DNA of 64,000 nt from Oikopleura dioica (Eukaryota; Animalia; Chordata), in the NCBI GenBank assembly GCA_907165135.1, contig OU015569.1:2728001-2792000 (forward strand), read 5' to 3'. The translations under genes were made by a program, and so were the position numbers. Of this stretch, positions 29,728-43,370 are shown piece by piece; position 1 is the stretch's first letter, and each line of letters opens with the position of its first letter. Below the pieces are notes generated by a model that was not told the DNA's origin, did no database searches, and was given only the letters and a program-made list of their open reading frames with translations.

Positions 29728-30117
29728 CTCAGGTAGAAGTCTCCAATTGTGGCAGGGTGAAAAAAAAATTTTTTTTTCTGAATGGCTCATCTGAAAGAGC
29801 TTCTCAAACTGTATAAAAAACGTTTTTACAGTCTGCCCAAATCTTTGAAATTTTCGAGATTTGGACTTGTCAGAGGTGGAAATTCCGAAATTTTAACTGC
29901 TCGTAGAGCAAAATTTTTCCATAACAAATTTTTTTTTCTATTTTTTTTCGGAAACTCTATAGTCGAATCTATGTGCTCGCGAAAATTGAAGCAGATCGGG
30001 CAACATTTGGGCTGCAAAAATTTTTTTTTGAGGATTAGTTTTGCATTAATTTTGCAAATATAAAGCATATACTTTTATTTAATTACAAACTACAAAAAAT
30101 TAATCAAATAATGCTCT

Positions 30118-30165
30118 AAAGTCACTTGAGGTCATTTGAGGTCATCTGAGGTCATTTGAGGTCAA
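30118..30165 (+). repeat. 10-bp period AGGTCA array in the left TIR (mirror copy at 42931-42980)
   Basis: aagtca cttg aggtca tttg aggtca tctg aggtca tttg aggtca; the right TIR has five TGACCT at 10-bp spacing. Confidence 0.9.
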
Positions 30166-30253
30166 CTTTTTTTTGCCGGTAAATTACATATTTTTATTTA
30201 TTTGAAACATGAAAACGATTATTTTATCAATTTTAAAAACAAAAAAATAATTT

Positions 30254-32011
30254 TTATACCGTGCATATGTGTAAGATGCAAATGTAAAAGCACTTTAAAC
30301 TAAAAAGAATGAGGCATGTTGTGTTTGTTCCTTCTCGTTTTGTTCTTCTTTTAAAAATCTTCTCAGTCAGAAAATCCAGGCATTCTGCGATGAAAATTTC
30401 CTTAATATTTTTAAAATTTAAAAAATAAAGATACAAGCAATTACTTTTTTTTCTCGACGGCATAAGAGAGAGTTTAGAGCAGTCAAAGAAGATTGTTTGA
30501 CGATCTGAAACTTTAACACTGAGGATTTCGACCATATTTTTCATGTTTATAAATACCTTTCTTTCGTTTAGGAAGACTCCGTGGTTCTGGATAACTGTCA
30601 TTCGCTGTTAAAATTTGTTTTTCGACGCTCTATTAAAAATAATTTAAAAGGCAAAGATTTCAGATAGTAAGATATTTGAAGTTACTGTAAAATATTCTTT
30701 ATTTAAGGACTTGTTTGCTTAATATCCATTTTTCGAAAAGAATGATGCCGGGGGCAGGGTCCTTAAATCTAAGCTTCTATGAGTATCCTCAATTTTACCT
30801 GAATAATTGAGACGATTAATTGACGAGCATAATTGTCTTTCAGATGAACTTTATCTGGCGAAAAAAAATGCTGTTTGAGGCTTCTGAAGAATCGGTACTC
30901 AAAAACATTCAATTTTTAGTTCTATTTCCAATTAAATGAAAACCTCTTCCTGTTTTACTCGATAATAGTTAGCTAAGCTAGGTACTTTTGCACTTAATAT
31001 CTTCTTGAGCCATTTTTGTGTTGATTCTTCAATTGTTCTAAGCGGCTTAGCAAGTGGAAAAGGTTGAACAAAGAGGATTTTTCTTGCATTCGTAAACAGC
31101 GATGTAAGGGTTCTATGTAAAACCTTTGAAAAGTTCTTTTATTTTTATTTTGTTAATTATCTTTATAATCGGACATAGATAAAAAAAATGTTCTTGCGAC
31201 GATTTAGATAGAGAAAGAACTATCCTGAATTGCTTTATCTAGGTCAACATCTTGGAATGCCAGTGTTGATGCCTTCAGAATATTGTTGTGTCCAGCATAG
31301 ACTAGAACTGTTCCGGAGACGCGCGAATGACAATTTGTATGGCAATTTTCGCATAAAAATCTCTCCGGTAGATTTTCACCATAGTTCCAGGCATTCCGGC
31401 TCTTGATTTGAAGAATTGGTCTTCTTTCCTCATCGCAGATTTGTCCTACTTTCATCAGGACTGCTAATTCAGTTAAACAGGCACCAGAATATGACGTAAT
31501 AATCCAGTTTTTTTTCTTTAATTTGTGTTTTCCGAAATATTTTATCTAAAGTGGTGTTTGAATAATTTCTTACTTTAGCTAATGAAACACATATATAAGG
31601 GGACTCCGCGGAAAACCAAAAGCAGGTCGCACCCTCATATTTTGAAAATTTTTACGCGTCTACTTAAAGATCTCAAGATGCTCATTCAGAATCGCGATTA
31701 AAAATTGTATCGGGGGCATCGGGATATAGATATGATGGCCGCCGAAAAGAGGCCCACAAACCATAAAATCGAATTTTTCTCGAATTCCCAATACCCCCGA
31801 TATGATGTTTATTCGCGATTCTGAACAGGCATATCAAGAGCTTTAAGAAAATGTGTTCAAAATTATCTCTCCATAAGGACGCCCCCATTAAAGTATTTTT
31901 TCCGCGTAGACCTAACTGTTCTATCATCTTTTTATATTCAAACAGTCCTGTGAATCTCCGAGAAGGAAATTTGTTTTTTCGTATCCGAAGAAACATGGTC
32001 GGCGCCAGCAC
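30254..32011 (-). other. Fragmentary ORFs of unknown function inside the giant transposon
   Basis: Short minus-strand ORFs (31682-32011; 31204-31455 with CENCHTNCH; 30254-30601) in the same orientation as other cargo; no family recognised. Confidence 0.3.
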
Positions 32012-32107
32012 TCTCGTTCATGCCCTTTGAACCATAAAGACTCCATAACTAATGTATGATATTAAGGATAGAACATGGATATTATGGATAGAACATCGGC
32101 TGAGCGC

Positions 32108-32478
32108 GGCTGCCCGTTTAGCGCCCCGCCATGACCGTTTTTTCAGAGACCCGTCAAATCTGAACGGTAAATGATTTTATCTTTATTATTTTTGCTTAAT
32201 GATCATCAAAGCCTATTCTTTTATACAAACAATTTGAAAATATCAAAATGGGATAACTTGGTCAAAGTCTCGGAATGAGAGCGACTCTTTCAAAGCCCTC
32301 TATAAAAATCTAAAGATTTATTTTGAAACTCAGACTAGAAATAAAAGGAAAGTAGAAGTGAAATAGAAGACTAAAAGTGAAGAAGTCGGAGCTCTACAAA
32401 ATCGAAGAATATAATTCATCGTTCAGATTAGACGGGTCTCTGAAAAATAGATAACGACGGGGCGCTAAACGGGCAGCC
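32108..32478. mobile_element. MITE nested in the giant transposon
   Basis: ~60 bp imperfect TIR ggctgcccgtttagcgccccg...cagagacccgtcaaatctgaacg mirrored at 32421-32478; no clear TSD. Confidence 0.75.
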
Positions 32479-33047
32479 GATCTTATATTTTACGCTTAAG
32501 ATGGAGAAAACAATTTTTCAATTAACTAGTTTTCCATTTTTCTAACATAGATATTGCGCTCATTTTTCTGACCTGTGTCGAGGCATCACCCATGTTCCGT
32601 TATGAGAACATACAGACAGTTTGAATCGATGATAAATATTAAATATCTTCTGTGTTTCAGGATTTGATTGAAGAATGGCTGTTTTATTTTATAGTCACAC
32701 GGGCAATAAAAAAAATTATAAGCATTCTGAATTCAATGATTTGATTTCTTCTTTCTTTTGCCTTTCTTTTACTCACAGAAAAGAGAATTTCAAAAACAAG
32801 AATTAACAATTAGGAATATTTGTATTTAACAACGAGGAAAAAAAATGTAATCGTGATATTTCCAGATTAGGAAAAACGGACTCTTTTCGATTCAGCATTG
32901 ACTTCACTTGAATGCTGTGCGACTCTTTTTGATGGAGTTGTTTTATTGCACACCCAATGACTTAAATTTATGAACTGTATTTATTAATATTGCCATACTT
33001 AATTTTTTTGAGTTGATTTTCCTTGATCTCAAGAATATTCGACGATG

Positions 33048-33400
33048 TTATTTCTGGTGTTCCAGCTTTGAATTCTTGCTCAATTCTTTAATAATTTTTA
33101 TAAATAATTTTAAGCAACAAATAATTTTAAAGATTTTTTTTAACCTGTTGAGCACATAGACCGCGCAATCACGATTCGTTTGCGGAACATTTTCGCGTTT
33201 TTTCTTCCAAGGGCCCTGATCATTCAGAATTTTTCCAATAGTATCAAGAAGTTTTTTTTTCGAACTATCAATGGCGTTTTGATAATTTCCAATAGCCCCA
33301 TTTGTATCATAGACAGTAACTGAGCGAGATTTGACATTAACGATCAAGAGTGCCGCGTGGTTTTCATCTTTTGATGACAGCAATAATGGTGCACAAATTT
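33048..33400 (-). CDS. Ulp1/SENP-like (C48) cysteine protease domain
   Basis: KICAPLLLSSKDENHAALLIVNVKSRSVTVYDTNG...ENVPQTNRDCAVYVLNRL shows His, Asp, Gln and Cys in C48 order. Confidence 0.75.
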
Positions 33401-33722
33401 TTTTCGTTTCTTAAGGCTTGGGTCATTATAAGTGCCTTGAGTCATGTTTCCGACGGAAGATGTAGGATATGAGCAAAAATCTGTTTCTCGAATTTTAAAT
33501 TCGGACAAGATAACGATTTTGACCCCGGACTTTGGAAATTTCCGCTTTCAGAGAAGATTTTGATATTTCGCTTAAGAAAAACAGAAAATTAGGTTTTAAA
33601 GCTCTAGAGTCACACCTTTGGCGGGCCACAGGGTAGAGGATACTGACTGTTTTATTTGTATTTTCTAATCTTAAGAGCGCAATCTTAATCAGGGTTCTCT
33701 AGAGCATATAGCCCTGTTTTAG

Positions 33723-36700
33723 TTAATGACGTTCGGTCGTTAAAACCCTTAACTGAGCTTGAATATCTGTTGCAGAGTAGACGTAATCGCTGATTGTTTG
33801 TTTGTTTGATAATTCTCGAAGATTGACGGGTCTTCTTTGAGGCTGATTTTTATTATCAATAATTATTGTTCCGTCTTTCTGTCCGATTTTTCTGGAAAAT
33901 GTGTTTCCAGAATTTCGAACACAGAGACTAATTTTTCCACTGGAACAGAGATCGCAGCTGCAGACTATGTCTTTTGCATAAAGAGCTCCTCTTGCTGCGT
34001 CGAAGTTTATCATACGAATCGATTTAATTGACGGTATGTTGAGATTTACGGAAGATTTCGTGGTCTCTTCATTTTTATTCTTGAGAATGGCATATTCTCG
34101 CCCAGCAAAATTTTGTTTTGCGCGTTTTTCTTTTTCTTCTGTCCGCAGCTTCTGCTCATTTTCCTTCAAGAATCCGAGGCATTCATCAAGAGTACCACAG
34201 CGATTTACAAGTTTCGCATTTTTTATCGTGGTAGCGCAGTGACTATGGGCGCCATCGACGAGGCCTCAGAATTCTAGAATTAGTTTCGCGGAAAAAATAC
34301 CTTTTCCATGGCGGCTGGTTTTGAAAATATAAGTTCTCCGCAGGCCATCGTTATTTGAAATGGCATGGTGAAAATGTTCCCTCGATTTGAATTCAGAGCT
34401 CGCATTATGTAAAACAGGGTTCGGGAAATTCAAAGATCTTATAAATCCGCAAGATCGAAATAGACCATTACCTACCGACGAGCCATAATGGAATTATCGT
34501 CAACATTAAAATGCAAATTTTAACCCTTTCGAACCCTTTCAGAAATCCTGTTAATGACTGTGAAATTTATGTTTCGATTTTTAAAATTTTCAACAATCAT
34601 TTTTTCCGCCTCAATCGGCGCTCCGGCAAATTTCTTCTCCATAAGAAAATGAAAGTATTGCATTTTTTGTATTTCGTTTTCATTCCATCGAGCGACCGCC
34701 GTTAAAACGTTACAATTCAATCCAAGGCGCCCGGCTTGAAGATATTCATGCTATTTTTAGGGTTCATGTAAACAAGCCAAGCGAAATTAATGAATTTTCT
34801 GATCCCGAACTGTGACGCAGTATTATTTTGAAGAACAAACGTCGAGGCGTAGTCAAGCTTTCCACGGGTCTCAGAAAGTTCTTGCTTATAGACACACTTG
34901 ACGTATTCATTCGATACAATTTAAGACCCTCGGCTCAAGATGAAGACTCCCTGGCTTAACATCTCCATGTTCATATACTTTAAGATCTTCATTATTTCTG
35001 CTCTTGTCGATGCTATGGGCAAGTGTTTCTCTCGTCATACTTTTAAGCTGATCGAAGAATTGCCGTATTGGCATTTTACCGCGAGTTTCGCTACCAGAAA
35101 CAAAAGCTGTCTCAGCTTTAACTCCAGCTTTGAGGAGTTCGAATCTGTCAAAGGCAACGGTCTCGTCAGGATGCATTTGTACGACTTTTTCGAATATTTC
35201 TCGATCAAAGTCTTCCATAAATTCATCCGGACCAACGCAACTCTTGTGAGTGCAGTCGCTGCAGGATGTTGAATTTTTTGGGTGAACAAAGCAACTTGTC
35301 TTCTTTTTACGATCAGTGACACAATATTGTTTGTCCGTTGTTGCACAGGTGCTCCTTTCCAAGATTTCTTTGAAATTGAAGCCTGCCAATGCGGGAACGT
35401 CTTATGGAGGGGGGCTTTTTTATCCTCAAGATCTTGTTAGGACCTGTTAACGGATTCTGCGATGAACTGTGATATCTAAGAAAAGAGTCTCCTGTCCTAA
35501 TTTCTTTCCAAGGCTCTGCGCAGCCTTCTCATAAGTTCCCTTGTTAAGGCAGGACTAATAAATGGTCTTAATCATATCATGGTGTGATTTCCATTACAGT
35601 GACAATAAATTTATAATAATTCACGATTTAAGACCCTATCTCGCAGGCGCATACAACTTGCGTTGTACGTGAGGGCGGAATGTAGTAAAATGGAGTCATA
35701 CTTTTGAACTCCTTCAAAGTTAGGTGTGTAAGCTGTGGATATTCACTAATAAATTCAGCGTGAAGTTCTTCAAGAGTTTTTTTCAGTATTCTTCTCGAAG
35801 TGGTCAGAGACTGAGTCGTTGGTCGTAGCAAGTCAATTTTATGGGTTCGCGTATCACATTTTTCACGAAGATATTTCAAGACAGTGCGGTCAAGAATTAA
35901 GGATTCCCTTAGAGTTGCTTTCTTTTGACTCGGATCAATGAAAGCTCTCTCGTCAAGAAATGCGTCTATTGCCGAAACAAATATAGGATTATAGACATGA
36001 TGGAGATCGTAAAATTCATTAATTTTATAATCCAATCTAATGAAATATTCGCGGATTTGATCTGATTGAAATTGGCATAATTTTCCCCAGATTCTTTTTC
36101 ATCTGCAAGCTTCTTCAGTTTCTTTTTCTAAAGCGAGGTCGCTCAACTTTCCGATATTTATAATAGGGTGTTTTTCCATTTACTCTATCAATATTGTTTT
36201 GGACTTTTTGACCGGTCCTTAATTCCAAATGTCGAGGAAAGAACATGAATTCTTTCTTGCGAATTATTTTCTTTTAATACCGCTTTTAAAATCACGTTCT
36301 CATTTTTCCAAGTTGATTTGTCAAGCATATTTTTCATTATTTCACTAGAATTATAATCTTTTATAAATTGTTCTATTCTTTTATAAAATTTTCTCTTCAC
36401 AAACCTTGGTAAAAGCTGCATTTTGATGAGAGTATTTTGATTCTGCTCACTCAGGTTTTGCATTTCACTTTTAATTTCCTCGGTTGTTTTCAAAGTTGAC
36501 AGAGCTTCCAAAATACTTGGAACGGAAGATGTACTGGCAATTTCTTCAAGTGCACCTATCAAGTTTTCTTTTTCAAGTTCAAGCCGCTCAGCGGGATTTT
36601 CATCTATCCAATCAGGATCAGAGTCATCTTCCTCAGAATTCGTCGTTTTATTCTTTTTAAGAATAGAGCGAGGCTGAATGTTTAGTTCCTGCTCTTGGTT

Positions 36701-37400
36701 CTGTTCAACACTTCCTTCCTCTTCTCTAGAGGCGCGTGATATTTTTTCGAGACGAACGTCAGCATCCAAATGCTCTATCGTTGATTTTGATAGAATCCCG
36801 ACTTCTTGAGGCATAAAAAGCATCTGCTCACTTGCCTCGACATTTTTCGTTAACACTGTAGGCAAATTTTTTGATGAATGCGGTGCCTCTTGATTTTCAA
36901 GAAGATAAGGCTCTTCAGATGATTTTTGCACCCTGACAGGTTCTTCTCTAACAGCTTGAACTAGACCGGAGCCGAAGTCATCTTTGTGATTACTCACGTG
37001 GTCTTCAATATGCTCTAATGGGATCCTCTGGCAGCATATAAAGCAGGTTGGCAAAACGCATTGTCTGATCTCATGCTGTCGTTTTACCCGGCCATTCTGT
37101 TTTGTTGGACGACTTCCACAGCATTTGTAGGCATCTTTTCTCTTCAATAGCTTCACATCATAGTCTTTGCTTGTGACGGAAGCCGTACAGTTACCAAGGT
37201 GATTATTGTATAAATCCAAAGAAGAAAAGTGCTTTTTGCAATCTTATTTTTGATAAGAACACAGCATACTTAGACAATCCTGATAATTATTATCTTTCCT
37301 GTGCAGACTCGACCAGAGCATATTTTAACATGATCATGAAATGCTGAGGCAGTAGAAGATGTTGGAAAATTATTTCCACATTTACGACAACAAGAGTATC
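33723..37400 (-). CDS. Intron-containing Sola2-like DDD transposase with N-terminal Zn-binding motifs (possibly disrupted)
   Basis: LTLKEFKSMTPFYYIPPSRTTQVVCACEI, CSDC, D-x-IEYVKCVYKQELS-like segment, NASSEFKSR, IFKTSRHGKG|LVDG and IVCSCDLCSSGKISLC parallel the Sola2 motifs F..LRP...C.C..H, DFAENY..Q.E.QS, DG..SQFK, SHGKG..DG and SC.C..C as recalled. The second catalytic Asp is not cleanly readable. Confidence 0.6.
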
Positions 37401-37439
37401 CTTTGATGGATTTTAACAGCGCTCAAGCTAAAAAGCTAG

Positions 37440-37510
37440 ACAAGTCCTGGGATTGAACAACGGTTTCCCGCGTCCGGCCGGGGTGTGCTACCACTGGATC
37501 AACTCGCCGA
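37440..37510 (-). pseudogene. Degenerate tRNA-Asp-like sequence (pseudo-tRNA or SINE head)
   Basis: Minus strand tccagtggtagcacaccccggccggacgcgggaaaccgttgttcaatccc has A and B boxes and resembles tRNA-Asp CCCCGCCTGTCACGCGGGAGACCG; anticodon loop and acceptor stem are broken. Confidence 0.55.
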
Positions 37511-37852
37511 GATCTCTATCGAGATTTTGAAATGATACTCTGAACGGTCGGGCCTGAGCGCTGCTAGGACCCATCACCTTTATAATTGGACAATTTAATC
37601 GATGGACGAGACGTCGGTCCATTGTATCTATTGGGTTGTAAGCGGTCGTTTGGGCAGACAAGTAAAGATAGAAAAATTTTTAGGTAAAATATTTTTCATT
37701 CTTTGAAGGTCTGTTCAAAAGGCCGCCTACCACCCTTTTTGTATTAAGCTCTTTAACTAAAAACTTTGCAAAAAGTTTTTCTGCTTCTTTCGCCGTAAAA
37801 GCGGGAGAAGATTTCAGCTTAAGAATGTTAGAAAATTCTTAAAAAAAAACGA

Positions 37853-40800
37853 TTATACCTTTGAGAGAATATCACCTAATTTTGACTTTTTCTTTGACGA
37901 TATTATCTTTGTCACATCATTGATTATTTTCGTGGCAAGTTTATCAGTCATTGATAGAAAACTAAGCTCTCTTAGAGAGTCTGCAGACCGTTGATCGGTG
38001 ATTTCGACCGATGCGGCGATCTCGCGGAGCCTACTTCTTGCCAGAGCTTGCCTTAAGCCTGTTGTTTTTGCTTTTGATTCTTTCTTGAACGCGTTTCTTA
38101 GGGAACGAGTTGAAGAATTTGTTCTGGTTAATGGAAAATTCTTCGTCCGACTGCACTCAAGAAGACTTGGTCTATGAGTGCTTGGTTTGCGTGCGATTTT
38201 TTGGAAGCGTGATCGTGTGACATTTTCAGTTTTCGTAAGCGCCTCAAGGTGACCATTTTGCGATTGTTTTATCATTTCCATCGTTTCTTCGTGATCTTGC
38301 AGATATTGATTCTCCGGTGTGTCCATCGAATTTTGAATTTCTGTCCCGTTGACATGATTGTAAGTGTAGTCGGAATCTTGTATATCCTCACTCACATTTT
38401 CATGACCATAACTTTGCAGGTGCGAAGAGCAATCTGCTTCCGCTCCTAATTCATTCACTGAAGACGTCGATAATTGAATTTCTGAATCCTCATCAATCGT
38501 AAGAGAACTTATATCTGGCACAGAAGGCGCTCGTTCGTTCATTATGTCGAAATCTGATGAAGATGGTACACTTGGAACGCATCCGTTCATTATGTCGAAA
38601 TCTGATGAAGACGGTACACTTGGAACGCATTCGTTCATTGTGTTTATATGGTCAAGATCAGGGTCTCGAAAAATACGAGGCCAGGCGGCAGCCACAACCC
38701 ACTCATACTCTTTTGGTTTCCACCTCTTAGAGACCCACCTCCGCTGGCCGCCAGGGTTCAGCGGCCACTTGGTGATTCATCTTGCGTTAACGCGACCCAG
38801 TCCGAATTTTACATTATCCGAGGCTGAAATTCGGTCTCCAGTGGAATCCAGCGGCCAGCGGCTGGCTTTGCCGCCAGAGCGTGGATTCGAAAAATGAATG
38901 GAGGCCGTAAGCGAAGGGCGCGCGGAGTATGAATAAATCCTCGCCGCCGCATGGCTGCCAATTTTTCGAAACCCTGGTCAAGATTCATCACACTTGGAAC
39001 TCGACCATAAAAACCTCCGTTAAATCAGTCAGTTCAGAGTTATTCGCCTGAACCTCATCGTGGGAATAAACAGAAATGGTGTCAATATTAAGAATTGACG
39101 GAGCTGTGCCAAGCGGTTCATTTAGATTATCAAGTCTCTCGAGATCAAGAACACTGAAATGCAAAATTAACTTTAATTCAATCAATCTTGAACGAATAAA
39201 AACCTTGGTACTTGAAGAAGATTAACAGGAGCTTCATTGGGGTCAAAGTCATAGTTAGACACAGCATCAATAGAATCGATATTCATGACGCTTGGCGCTG
39301 GACCAAGTGCGCATAAATCATCTGGTGGTGGTTCAACAGGCATCATAGAGACGCCAAACTCGGACATCGTCTAAATACTTTAACAATTAATCCTTATCCA
39401 AGATTTTATCGAACAAATTGCTTAAGGGTAACAATCACGTAAAAAATAAGGAAAGAGTGAAAGAAAAGGATAAACATCGTAGAACATTGACATCATAACA
39501 GAACTTCTCATCCACGACGACGACTTAAAAAGAAAAATGAACTCCACATCATATAATTCGATTTTACCACAAGTTTTTGGAAACAACGATGTGAGAGAGA
39601 CAAATTTTCCACACAGTAATTCGTAATAACCCTGATGTCGTCCACCTTGATTGTAAGATCGTCTTATTCTTTGTTGGAGACGTAGCTCATCATATGCACG
39701 ATGAAGTTGATATATTCTGTAGTCTAAACACCTCGTCATTTCCAAAACATCTATTGTTTCTTTAGATATTTGATTCCAATTTGAAGGCTTGTCAAGTTTT
39801 TGGAAGAAAAACTTTTAACCAATCGTTCAGCTTTTAATCTGAGCCATTCTTTCGAAGAGATCGTCTTAAATATAACAGCAAGCTCAAGAGGCCTCTTAAC
39901 CATAAATTTTGCAATTTCTCGATCGTCTAGATCAGAGCTGGTTATTTGATAACTGTCGTCACTCGAAAAGAAAAAGAATTAATTTTTAGAGAAATTTTGG
40001 AGACTTTTAAAGCGCTTACTTCTATTATCTTTTTCTAAAGCTTTCTGAAGATGATTGAACGAGACGAACGCGAAAGATAGAAAAACGACGCGTAAATATT
40101 AATTCGCACACTAAAATTTTTTGACAGATCATAGGACGCGAATTCGACAGCCATGATCCCGATTATAATCGAAAATTCATATGATAAGCGGTACCGCACA
40201 TTCAAAAGAGCAATTTATGACAGGCCCGCCCTGAAAATGGAAAACGAAAAACGACTCGACAGTCATAGTGGCTTCGGTTCTTTCCAATATATCTTCTAAT
40301 GCCCTGTACATTTGCTTTGGAGCAAACTCAGGGAGTTGGCTTTGCACGACACGAGACATCATAAAGGTAAGATTCGCCATGGTCCCCGAGCCATCATTTG
40401 ACACTTCGAAGGAATTAAGGAATCGTGGGATTTTTCCAAGGTATTGTTTTCGAGCATCCATGGTTTTAACTAAGCAGATCAATTTTTATACTTTTGAAGC
40501 AATAATCAACGATCAGAAAGCAGAAAAAGCGGGTGTGCGCTCCGCGCCTGTCTTAAAGGAAACCCGCAACTTTCTAGAATTGATGGCCTTGAGGGCGTTG
40601 TTGAATTCAGGTTATAGGGACTTTTGCTGATTTCTAAAATGGTCTTTATAGCCTCGATGGCCATGATGTCCTTGATGGCCTTGTCGACAATCTCTTTTTC
40701 TTTTATCGCCAGAGAGAAATGAAAAAAATCGGTCAAAACGAAAAACACAAAGAAACCGACTTAAGCCGACCACCCACCGACCAAACCCCACCACCGATCA

Positions 40801-42660
40801 AATCAAAAAAAAAATCCATGGTAGGATCGTTCGGTGCCAATATAAACCCCACCATTTCCGACTAGGTCGAGTTTTTTGGTCGGGTCGATGGCCTTGATGG
40901 CCATGCTGGCCGTGATGGCCTTGATTGCCTTGTTGACAATTTCAGGTTCATCCCTATTAAAGGTGTAACGAACGTTAGTGATCATAATTCTCGGTCCGAC
41001 CCAGAGTTGCAGATTTTTGAAAATTTTTTGTGAGCTGAGCTAGCTGAGCTGTGGTCGAAATTGAGCTGAGCTGGCCCCTTGAAAAGCAACTGAGCTGAGC
41101 TGGATTTTTTCGAAAAAAATGAACTGAGCTGAGCTGAGCTTGGGCTAATTTGAAAATTTTTGAGCTAAGCTGAGCTGACAATTTTTTTAAGCTGAACTGA
41201 GCTGAGCTGGCCCCTTGAAAAGCAACTGAGCTGAGCTGAATTTTTCGAAAAAATGAGCTGAGCTGAGCTGAGCTTGGGCTAATTTGAAAATTTTTGAGCT
41301 GAGCTGAGCTGACAATTTTTTTAAGCTGAGCTGAGCTGAGCTGGCCCCTTGAAAAGCAACTGAGCTGAGCTGGATTTTTTCGAAAAAAATGAGCTGAGCT
41401 GAGCTGAGCTTGGGCTAATTTGAAAATTTTTGAGCTGAGCTGAGCTGACAATTTTTTTAAGCTGAACTGAGCTGAGCTGACCCCTTTGAAAACAACTGAG
41501 CTGAGCTGAGCTGAGCTGGATTATTTCGAAAAATTTGAGCTGAGCTGAGCTGAGGTTTATCTGTTAGTTTTTGAGCTGAGCTGATGATTTTTCAAACTGA
41601 GCTAGCTGAGCTGAGCTTACAATTTTTTCAAGCTGAGCTGAGCTGAGCTAGCTGAGTTGAGGTTAAAATTGAGCTAGCTGAGCTGATCTGACTTTTCTCG
41701 AAGAACCATTGAGCTGAGCTGAGCTGAGCTGGCCCCCTTGTAAAGCATCTGAGCTGAGCTGAGCTTGGGCTTATCTGAAAATTTTTGAGCTGAGCTGAGC
41801 TGACAATTTTTTTAAGCTGAACTGAGCTGAGCTGACCCCTTTGAAAACAACTGAGCTGAGCTGAGCTGAGCTGGATTTTGTCGAAAAAATTGAGCTGAGC
41901 TAAGCTGGGGTTTATCTGTTAGTTCTTGAGCTGAGCTGAGCTGATGATTTTTCAATCTGAGCTTGCTGAGCTGAGCTGACAATTTTTTCAAGCTGAGCTG
42001 AGCTGGGCTAGCTAAGTCGAGGTTAAAATTGAGCTAGCTGAGCTGAGCTGACTTTTCTCGAAGAACCATTGAGCTGAGTTGAGCTTGCTTTCTTCAGAAA
42101 AATTAAGCTGAGCTGAGCTGAGCTGACCCTCACCTCGAAATCGCTGAGCTGAGCTGAGCTGAGCTGTAGCTCATCTAGCTCATATAGCTCACCTCAGCTA
42201 GCTCACAAAATTTGTAACTCTGGTCCGCGCTATTCCGATTTACGGAAAAATGTAAAATGAGGGAATTATAATGGCCTAAATTCCCTTTTATAATTTTAGA
42301 CTTGTAATAGATATATCTGTTTAAAAAATAAGTCAAACGATAATTATAATAAATAAGTATAAGAAGGACCACCGAACATACTGTTTTTTCAGAATTTTTT
42401 TCTGCGCGAGGCCCATCTAGGCCAAAACCGTGGGGGAAGTCTTTAAAGCATACCTTCTGTCTTCGTTTGAATTCTACTTTCTTTGGAGTCAGTCGTTGGC
42501 AGGATTTCTTCTGTTTTTGATTTTTTCTGCAATTAACAAGCGTCTTATATAATTTTAAGAATAAATATATATATTTAGTATACCTGTCACTGGTATCGAA
42601 AATTATTAACAATCTTTCTCTTAGCTTTCTCTTCTTCTCTTTCAATTTTGTGTGTTTCAC
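37853..42660 (-). CDS. Multi-exon cargo gene(s) of unknown function with internally duplicated exons
   Basis: Minus-strand ORFs 42175-42660, 40803-40985, 40506-40748, 40177-40482, 39422-39745, 39182-39367, 38988-39185 and 37853-38695; paired modules EIV(D/N)KAIK and (G/P)xAPS(V/I)xNID. Confidence 0.45.
38521..38640. repeat. 48-bp tandem repeat (about 2.5 copies) encoding 16-aa units
   Basis: attatgtcgaaatctgatgaagayggtacacttggaacgcatycgttc repeated; translates MN(E/G)CVPSVPSSSDFDI. Confidence 0.9.
41002..42222. mobile_element. hAT-type element filled with (GAGCT)n higher-order satellite
   Basis: TIR cagagttgcagattt / aaatttgtaactctg; imperfect 8-bp flanks gtccgacc / gtccgcgc; ~135 bp and ~360 bp higher-order repeats of GAGCT runs. 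Confidence 0.8.
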
Positions 42661-43370
42661 AGAATTAACTTTCTCGAAGTGAACTGCCAGCCAGAAATTA
42701 GTTTGGAAATTTTTTTTTCATACTGTGATTTTGATTGATGCATCCATTAAATAATCATTAATGAGCGAGGTAGTTCCGGAATCGCGAGCGCATGTGTACA
42801 CTTCACCGTCGATCGATATTGAAACAAAAAATTTTCAAAATCAAATGAGCAATATTTTTGCTCAAAATTATTATTTTCAAAATTAAAAAAAATAAAAAAA
42901 TGTAATTTAACGGCAAAAAAAATTGTTCTCAAATGACCTCAGATGACCTCAGATGACCTCAAATGACCTCAAGTGACCTCAGAGCACTATTTGATTACTT
43001 TTTTGTAGTTTGTAATTTAATAAAAGTATATGCTTTGTATTTGCGAAATTAGTGCAAAACTAATCCTCAAAAAAAAATTTTTACAGCCCAAATGTTGCCC
43101 GATTTGCTTCAATTTTCGCAAGCACATAGATTCGACTATAGAGATTCCAAAAAAAAATAAAAAAAAAATTTTGTTATGGAAAAATTTTGCTCTATGAGCA
43201 GTTAAAATTTCGGAATTTCAACCTTTATCAAGTCCAAATGTCGAAAATTTCGAAGATTTGAGCAGACTCTAAAAACGTTTTTTATACAGTTTGAGAAGCT
43301 CTTTCAGATGAGCCAATCAGAAAAAAAAAAATTTTTTTCGACCTGCCACAATTGGAGACTTCTACCTCAG

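Follow-up and report, generated by a model that had tools for sequence, protein, structure and literature searches.

The 64,000-nucleotide stretch of the Oikopleura dioica genome analysed here (GenBank assembly GCA_907165135.1, contig OU015569.1, positions 2,728,001 to 2,792,000 of the forward strand; hereafter the window, to which positions refer unless another contig is named) contains two long inverted arms enclosing about 13.6 kb. A first-pass annotation had read this locus as a giant Sola2-like transposon with a multi-gene cargo, which raises the questions of whether it is one mobile element, to which superfamily its transposase belongs and what its other reading frames are. Our analysis indicates that window positions 29732-43366 are quite probably one copy of a young cut-and-paste Oikopleura DNA transposon, Sola2-like, in which the transposase is fused to an Ulp1-type protease.

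Six near-identical copies at unrelated sites

We searched the window's own assembly (64.3 Mb, 19 contigs) with the left arm and obtained 12 full-length matches. Paired, these make up six elements, of which one measures 10.9 kb and the others ~13.6 kb. Exactly 12 occurrences of the terminal 25-mer were counted in the genome, with no further match at ≤3 mismatches; the terminal-sequence search proposed in the first-pass annotation therefore yielded the paired ends of six elements with 3-bp target-site duplications (TSDs). Comparison of the six copies fixed the limits of the element at window positions 29732-43366 (13,635 bp). Aligned with one another, the copies are 99.5-99.95% identical over the whole interior, and their flanks are unrelated, each copy lying at a different site. 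The short copy (copy 6) has a 2.73-kb internal deletion corresponding to window positions 35647-38378. The termini are as follows.

29729-29731: left TSD, TCA; the same 3 bases border the right end
29732-30164, plus strand: left terminal inverted repeat (TIR), opening GGTAGAAGTCTCC; weaker extension to 30225
30121-30164: 10-bp tandem repeat GTCATTTGAG, 4.4 copies, at the inner end of the left TIR (Tandem Repeats Finder, TRF)
42934-43366, minus strand: right TIR; weaker extension from 42864; 10-bp repeats at 42928-42981
43367-43369: right TSD, TCA

A repeat search of the window placed the inverted arms at 29728-30164 and 42934-43370 (437 nt, 93% complementary), with a weaker inward extension of 59 nt at 83%, and the long TIRs called earlier are thus upheld. 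Left and right arms differ by the same 7% in all copies, so that the divergence characterizes the family and is no sign of age. The 10-bp repeats of the left TIR are mirrored at 42928-42981, and these subterminal repeats are candidate transposase-binding sites. Arrays of a GTCATTTGAG-like 10-bp unit also occur at C4:8396846-8397124 and C3:369126-369268 (C denoting contigs of the assembly), without the rest of the element.

CTCAG adjoins GTAGAAGTCTCC at both ends of the window element, and the first-pass annotation had offered two readings of this match, a 5-bp TSD or a 3-bp TCA duplication with GG...CC termini. Because the other five copies do not repeat CTCAG, the duplication is confined to TCA, which makes the TSD 3 bp long; that 5 bp match in the window is an accident of one site. 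The same five copies also rule out a 4-bp TSD with asymmetric ends. The sequence that is invariant across copies runs from GGTAGAAG to CTTCTACC, so that the element ends read GGTAG...CTACC and the termini are GG...CC, in line with the second of the two readings. In element orientation the TSDs of the six copies are TCA, AAA, TCT, ATG, ACT and AAA/TAA, perfect in five and with a single mismatch in one. All six copies have G or C immediately ahead of the TSD and a purine immediately behind it, a sample too small to speak of a target preference.

The features of a class II cut-and-paste TIR transposon were all found, namely TIRs, TSDs, multiple unrelated sites and an encoded DDE/D transposase. 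The element is a real, very recently mobile cut-and-paste DNA transposon. A 29-mer representing the empty site had no match in the JGI metagenomes, a result that is uninformative either way.

A second family and a related intronless protein

A six-frame search of the genome with exon 34910-35401 returned the six copies and one distant contig-4 paralogue of 29% identity, whose exons are longer than, and collinear with, those of the window between ~37.8 kb and 33.8 kb. This second family (family B; the window element belongs to family A) has a single full-length copy in the genome, of 13.06 kb, at C4:5755114-5768168. It is bounded by TIRs of 541 bp at 97% identity, which continue for another 125 bp, and by a TTA duplication, the termini reading GGGAAG...CTTCCC. 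The ends of families A and B align over their first ~130 bp, a G-A7-T7 tract included. Two elements of 1.7-1.8 kb (C5:5408416-5410137 and C1:15661651-15663483, each with TSD TTT) are nearly all TIR, consisting of two ~530-bp arms 83-85% identical to the family B TIR, and look like non-autonomous derivatives. Across both families, all nine insertions have 3-bp TSDs, eight of them perfect and one with a mismatch.

An exhaustive protein search with the 276-residue exon of family B against 1.84 billion representatives gave three true relatives and one false match. All three relatives come from ENA metagenome assemblies, and one, P0003, is a 1461-residue intronless protein that aligns with the window exon by exon: the zinc fingers (37282-36995), a TPFYY...CAC block (35978-35643), a Cys/His cluster (35401-34937) and the region 34406-33921, with NASSEFKS...HGKG and LVDGAHSH. 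Two word searches with the P0003 core returned nothing beyond P0003, and scans of metagenome and viral contigs for further relatives found none.

A second metagenomic relative, P0002 (182 residues), is by eye ~40% identical to exon 34910-35401. It continues past ...TLNIE into unrelated residues where the window exon stops (...SLHLE), which suggests intron read-through at the same site in a related larvacean element. A third relative in the genome, degenerate and with stop codons (C5:4754343-4757687), lies between ~400-bp inverted repeats of 80% identity, at 4750278-4750681 and 4767626-4768038 and ~17 kb apart; the ends of these repeats resemble neither family A nor family B, and a TSD was not observed there.

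One predicted gene from zinc fingers to an Ulp1-type protease domain

Nearly all open frames of the element lie on the minus strand, where one multi-exon gene occupies the interval from ~39.4 to 33.05 kb. Its large predicted product comprises, in order, an acidic N-terminus, C2HC zinc fingers, a Cys/His cluster, an RNase-H-like D-D-D core and a C-terminal Ulp1/SENP-type cysteine protease. We searched the transposase exon by exon, with exon junctions taken from the genomic sequence and splice sites predicted. From 5' to 3' the parts are as follows.

Near 39367, minus strand: candidate start codon
37856-39367, minus strand: probable 5' coding region, a low-complexity acidic N-terminus with diverged (A/V)PSV repeats (open frames and TRF)
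38536-38643: 48-bp tandem repeat within the 5' coding region (TRF)
36980-37282, minus strand: N-terminal C2HC-type zinc fingers (family B alignment, E 3e-5 to 6e-4)
35643-35978, minus strand: exon ending ...TPFYY...CAC (tblastn: P0003 E=5.6e-6, family B E=4e-13)
34937-35401, minus strand: exon with the conserved Cys/His cluster, upstream of the core (family B tblastn E=1.4e-19)
34795-34857, minus strand: exon with the first catalytic Asp (LDYAST), equivalent to LDYGSD in P0003 and SDYASK in family B
34538-34717, minus strand: exon ending INRISE, with Glu at the position of the second catalytic Asp; aligns to ...MRISD of family B
34305-34406, minus strand: exon NASSEFKS...RHGKG, with the FKS block adjacent to the second Asp and the HGK block; aligns to NCAGEFKS...KHGKS of P0003 and fits published Sola2 blocks
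33921-34262, minus strand: exon with the third catalytic Asp (LVDGAHSH) and a C-terminal CxC...C motif (tblastn: P0003 residues 974-1117 E=2e-7, family B E=6e-10)
33051-33493, minus strand: Ulp1/SENP-like cysteine protease, part of the transposase gene, in exons at ~33458-33493 and 33051-33368

No homology was found for the frames at 37856-39367, which probably encode the acidic N-terminus of the transposase. The part of P0003 equivalent to the zinc fingers gives a weak match to the LYAR zinc finger, and the Cys and His columns of the Cys/His cluster are invariant across five relatives. The junctions at 34497-34549 and 34780-34860 fit canonical splice sites poorly, one candidate GT-AG intron being only 23 nt long.

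The protease is the sole Pfam match in the element: positions 33048-33383 match Peptidase_C48/Ulp1 with E=1.9e-6 and 28.3 bits, against a gathering cut-off of 20.7 bits. Alignment of the window protease with human SENP1 brings the catalytic His, Asp, Gln and Cys into register. In P0003 the C-terminus is collinear with the window's Ulp1 exons, with IRETDFCSYPTS followed by DENHAALL, and in family B an H..D..C pattern stands at the same place, with a non-significant alignment; for both family B and P0003 the protease likeness extends no further than H..D..C collinearity (E=0.87). Because the position is kept in three divergent lineages, we read Ulp1 as the predicted C-terminal domain of the transposase and not as cargo.

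Plant KI-MULEs and some CACTA elements also encode an Ulp1 protease of the C48 type, usually as a separate or captured gene. Their transposases belong to the Mutator or CACTA superfamily, unlike the one described here, where the protease forms the transposase C-terminus in three divergent lineages. No link between an Ulp1/C48 protease and Sola2 was found in the literature searched. By way of speculation, host proteins or those of the element may be the targets of SUMO removal by the fused protease, with resistance to SUMO-dependent silencing or control of the transposase as conceivable ends; alternatively, the protease may process the fusion protein to which it belongs.

The transposase carries Sola2-like catalytic blocks

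We compared the transposase with the blocks published for Sola2_DFa-2 and Sola2_PPa-1, which read FY.FVP...C..C, DFKEN, W[SC]D[GN]A[KR]HFKS and YHGKS[DE][VC]D (Bao & Jurka 2013, PMC3627910). P0003 has DYGS at residue 890, DNCAGEFKS at 973 and HGKSEVD at 1004, and its three catalytic Asp residues (D1, D2 and D3) are spaced by 83 and 37 residues; in Sola2_DFa-2 the corresponding distances are 87 and 43. The strict D3 pattern HGKS[DE][VC]D, drawn from published sequences only, is present exactly in P0003 and arose in 1 of 200,000 shuffles of that protein; the loosened D2 pattern D[GN][AC]..[HE]FKS in P0003 arose in 17 of 200,000. The window exons carry LDYAST, NASSEFKS...HGKG and LVDG, the D2 codon itself being Glu. 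At the level of signature, the transposase possesses the Sola2 catalytic blocks, as the first-pass annotation had proposed for an intron-containing gene, and kinship with the rare Sola2 transposases is probable.

The likeness is closest to the dictyostelid Sola2 elements. Both have a D-D-D core with near-identical D2 (D[GN]A..FKS) and D3 (HGKS.VD) blocks at similar spacing, a Cys-rich block upstream of the core, a comparable FY..VP...C..C block, intron-containing transposase genes and termini that begin with G. The elements of Dictyostelium fasciculatum and Polysphondylium pallidum are also 10-15 kb long (PMC3627910), so that the 13.6 kb seen here, earlier thought unusually large for Sola2, is within the published range. 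In contrast, the present TIRs measure 440-780 bp and those of dictyostelid Sola2 12-22 bp, the D1 block is DY[AG][SN] rather than DFKEN, the transposase ends in an Ulp1/C48 fusion that sets it apart from Sola2, and the Fanzor gene of the dictyostelid elements is absent. The TSD differs too, as had been suspected: it is 3 bp without obvious consensus here and 4 bp and AT-rich in Sola2. The length of the TSD can vary within a superfamily, hAT families having 5, 6 or 7 bp. We therefore describe the element as a putative Sola2-like lineage with a 3-bp TSD and not as a member of Sola2 in the strict sense.

Superfamilies that do have 3-bp TSDs fit less well. The element matched neither the Zator-related model PF07592 nor the Pfam models of Harbinger and CACTA; its termini are GG...CC and not CAC...GTG; and only 37 residues separate D2 from D3, with no C(2)C/H(3-4)H motifs between them. 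Zator, PIF-Harbinger and CACTA-CMC were rejected on these grounds. KDZ/Zisupton, which the combination of zinc fingers with a protease had suggested, was ruled out by TSDs of 7-8 bp, and a Zisupton-Ulp1 link was not found in the literature searched.

An AlphaFold model of the family B exon that spans D1 and D2 was of low confidence (predicted local distance difference test, pLDDT, 62.5). Weak matches to model residues 174-276 were enriched in RNase-H-like folds, including IstA, Transib, RNase H, Argonaute PIWI and retroviral integrase (Z 5.5), all in the range called common.

Autonomy, placement and alternative readings

Two sets of results weigh against this reading, the first concerning the gene and the second its placement. 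The splice sites of the transposase gene are predicted from the DNA, and the second catalytic position is where this matters most. The first and third catalytic Asp are present in the element, whereas at the second position all six copies read ...INRIS-E, compared with ...MRIS-D in family B and ...RLT-D in P0003. The only canonical, frame-keeping GT-AG intron, of 53 nt, leaves 24 extra codons (counted by hand) before HNASSEFKS in all six copies, and an Asp at this junction would require non-GT/AG boundaries. Between the six copies the stretch does not vary, nor is it a repeat from elsewhere; a miniature inverted-repeat transposable element (MITE) inside the D2 exon (34405-34545) was ruled out, since the stretch occurs only in the six copies. 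Three options may account for it: the Glu is catalytic and accompanied by an extra loop, unusual splicing changes the reading, or the protein is inactive. In addition, 1-bp indels between copies fall inside exons at 35273, 36330 and 38197, all in homopolymer runs, and may be frameshifts or assembly errors.

The last of the three options leads to the strongest alternative, in which all six copies are non-autonomous, their transposase catalytically dead, and were mobilized in trans from a source that the assembly either lacks or contains unrecognised. Beside the Glu and the 24-codon insert, it would accommodate the loss of 2.7 kb of the gene from copy 6 and the 1-bp differences, which affect a core exon in copies 3 and 4 and N-terminal exons in copies 2 and 5. 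However, the assembly holds no other source with these termini, and such relatives as it contains are degenerate or share only 29% identity; the copies also spread very recently, and their other exons have stayed open. Every 1-bp difference falls in a homopolymer, where assembly error may be the cause, and unusual splicing, reported to be common in this genome, could change the reading at D2. On balance we think this account unlikely, though it is the one to be taken most seriously.

The second set concerns the assignment to Sola2. The link rests on short blocks compared by eye and by regular expression, and nine insertions have a TSD of 3 bp whereas both Sola2 and Sola1 are published with 4 bp. 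Searches of Pfam, PDB, a word index and an all-against-all protein comparison returned no named relative of the transposase part, nor did NCBIfam; for Pfam a blank is expected because Sola, Zator, Kolobok, Academ, Dada and KDZ lack Pfam models. A language-model search placed the P0003 core nearest to clusters carrying DUF7869, at a similarity of 0.95.

These results could instead mean that the transposon is genuine but that its transposase belongs to another Sola group, to a DUF7869 type (arthropods, tardigrades) or to an undescribed superfamily that shares only short blocks. The TSD length, the want of a hidden Markov model (HMM) or BLAST link to any named family, the DUF7869 clusters and the D1 block DY[AG][SN] in place of DFKEN would all suit such an assignment. 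Against it, the agreement with published Sola2 in blocks D2 and D3 and in D-D-D spacing is so close that chance is very unlikely, and TSD length is itself variable within hAT. The DUF7869 HMM (PF25273, 26-bit cut-off) found no match in P0003 or the exons at E≤10, and a six-frame search of the whole genome gave one unrelated 15-bit match, none of it in the element. We judge this explanation improbable, slightly more so than the preceding one.

That the inverted arms are two independent shorter insertions, or the copies segmental duplications, is practically excluded: apart from the a priori possibility, the 7% difference between the arms would speak for it, but it is refuted by the 13.6-kb interior and the arm difference common to all six copies, by unrelated flanks that each have their own 3-bp TSD and by termini that are paired and never found singly, so that the locus is a single transposon, as first supposed.

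Proposed mechanism and wider meaning

For the Sola2-like, Ulp1-fused element, transposition might proceed by binding of the transposase to the conserved terminal ~25 bp, perhaps also to the subterminal 10-bp repeats, and by excision of the element at its GG/CC ends. Integration would use cuts staggered by 3 nt, the repair of which would yield the 3-bp TSD.

A broader proposal seems to us evenly balanced between right and wrong: that these elements form a distinct, currently active Sola2-related clade distinguished by a TSD of 3 bp, by termini reading GG...CC, by TIRs several hundred bp long and by the permanent fusion of the transposase to an Ulp1/SENP deSUMOylase, with at least two 13-kb families and short TIR-only derivatives in Oikopleura, and that the fusion functions in transposition or anti-silencing and is not cargo. 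A new clade, which the first-pass annotation had also raised, is plausible.

The genome of Oikopleura dioica is among the smallest and most transposon-poor of animals. That it should hold six near-identical 13.6-kb copies and a second family of similar build suggests that very large elements are still active in a strongly compacted genome. The findings would add a Sola2-like lineage with an integration stagger of 3 nt instead of 4, and the occurrence of the SUMO-protease fusion in three divergent lineages opens to direct test whether deSUMOylation contributes to transposition or to the evasion of silencing. The family is worth adding to larvacean repeat libraries, since Pfam-based annotation detects the protease only. 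We consider the relevance moderate and directed to specialists in transposons and larvacean genomes.

The remainder of the element

Outside the transposase gene, the following features were identified within the element.

30772-31545, minus strand: possible second gene, SGNH/GDSL-esterase-like, with open frames at 31207-31545, 30935-31138 and 30772-30915 (motif order by eye)
31646-31864: internal palindrome with 79-nt arms at 75%, found inside the six copies only
32107-32479: nested MITE-like insertion with 72-nt inverted arms that recur elsewhere
39425-40485, minus strand: element-specific region with short open reading frames (ORFs), unique to the six copies
40472-42171: nested dispersed repeats (40472-41060) and a GAGCT-rich satellite (41062-42171) (TRF)

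The multi-gene cargo proposed earlier is reduced by these results: the ORFs exist and one esterase-like gene is plausible, but Ulp1 is placed as a domain of the transposase and the other ORFs are without support. The esterase-like gene would lie downstream of the transposase gene and is suggested by motif order only, SGNH-like blocks (SYSG, YGE, GHNN and DKVH) standing by eye in the expected order and spacing. Positions 30772-31545 gave no match in Pfam, NCBIfam, PDB or a word search, and a single-sequence AlphaFold2 model of the esterase-like exon was unusable (pLDDT 30). For the region 39425-40485 and the plus-strand ORFs there was no Pfam match and no counterpart in family B or P0003.

Beyond these genes, the rest of the 13.6 kb is mostly non-coding, made up of the long TIRs, a nested MITE, dispersed repeats and a satellite. 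Of the nested MITEs in the first-pass annotation, the one at 32107-32479 belongs to a dispersed MITE-like family, its arms recurring as inverted pairs at many other loci with 74-81% identity; it is present in all six copies and was therefore inserted before the burst. The palindrome at 31646-31864, being confined to the element, is not shown to be a MITE. The satellite noted earlier is a dispersed GAGCT-rich repeat, and the repeats at 40472-42171 as a whole match many other genomic loci at 70-97% identity.

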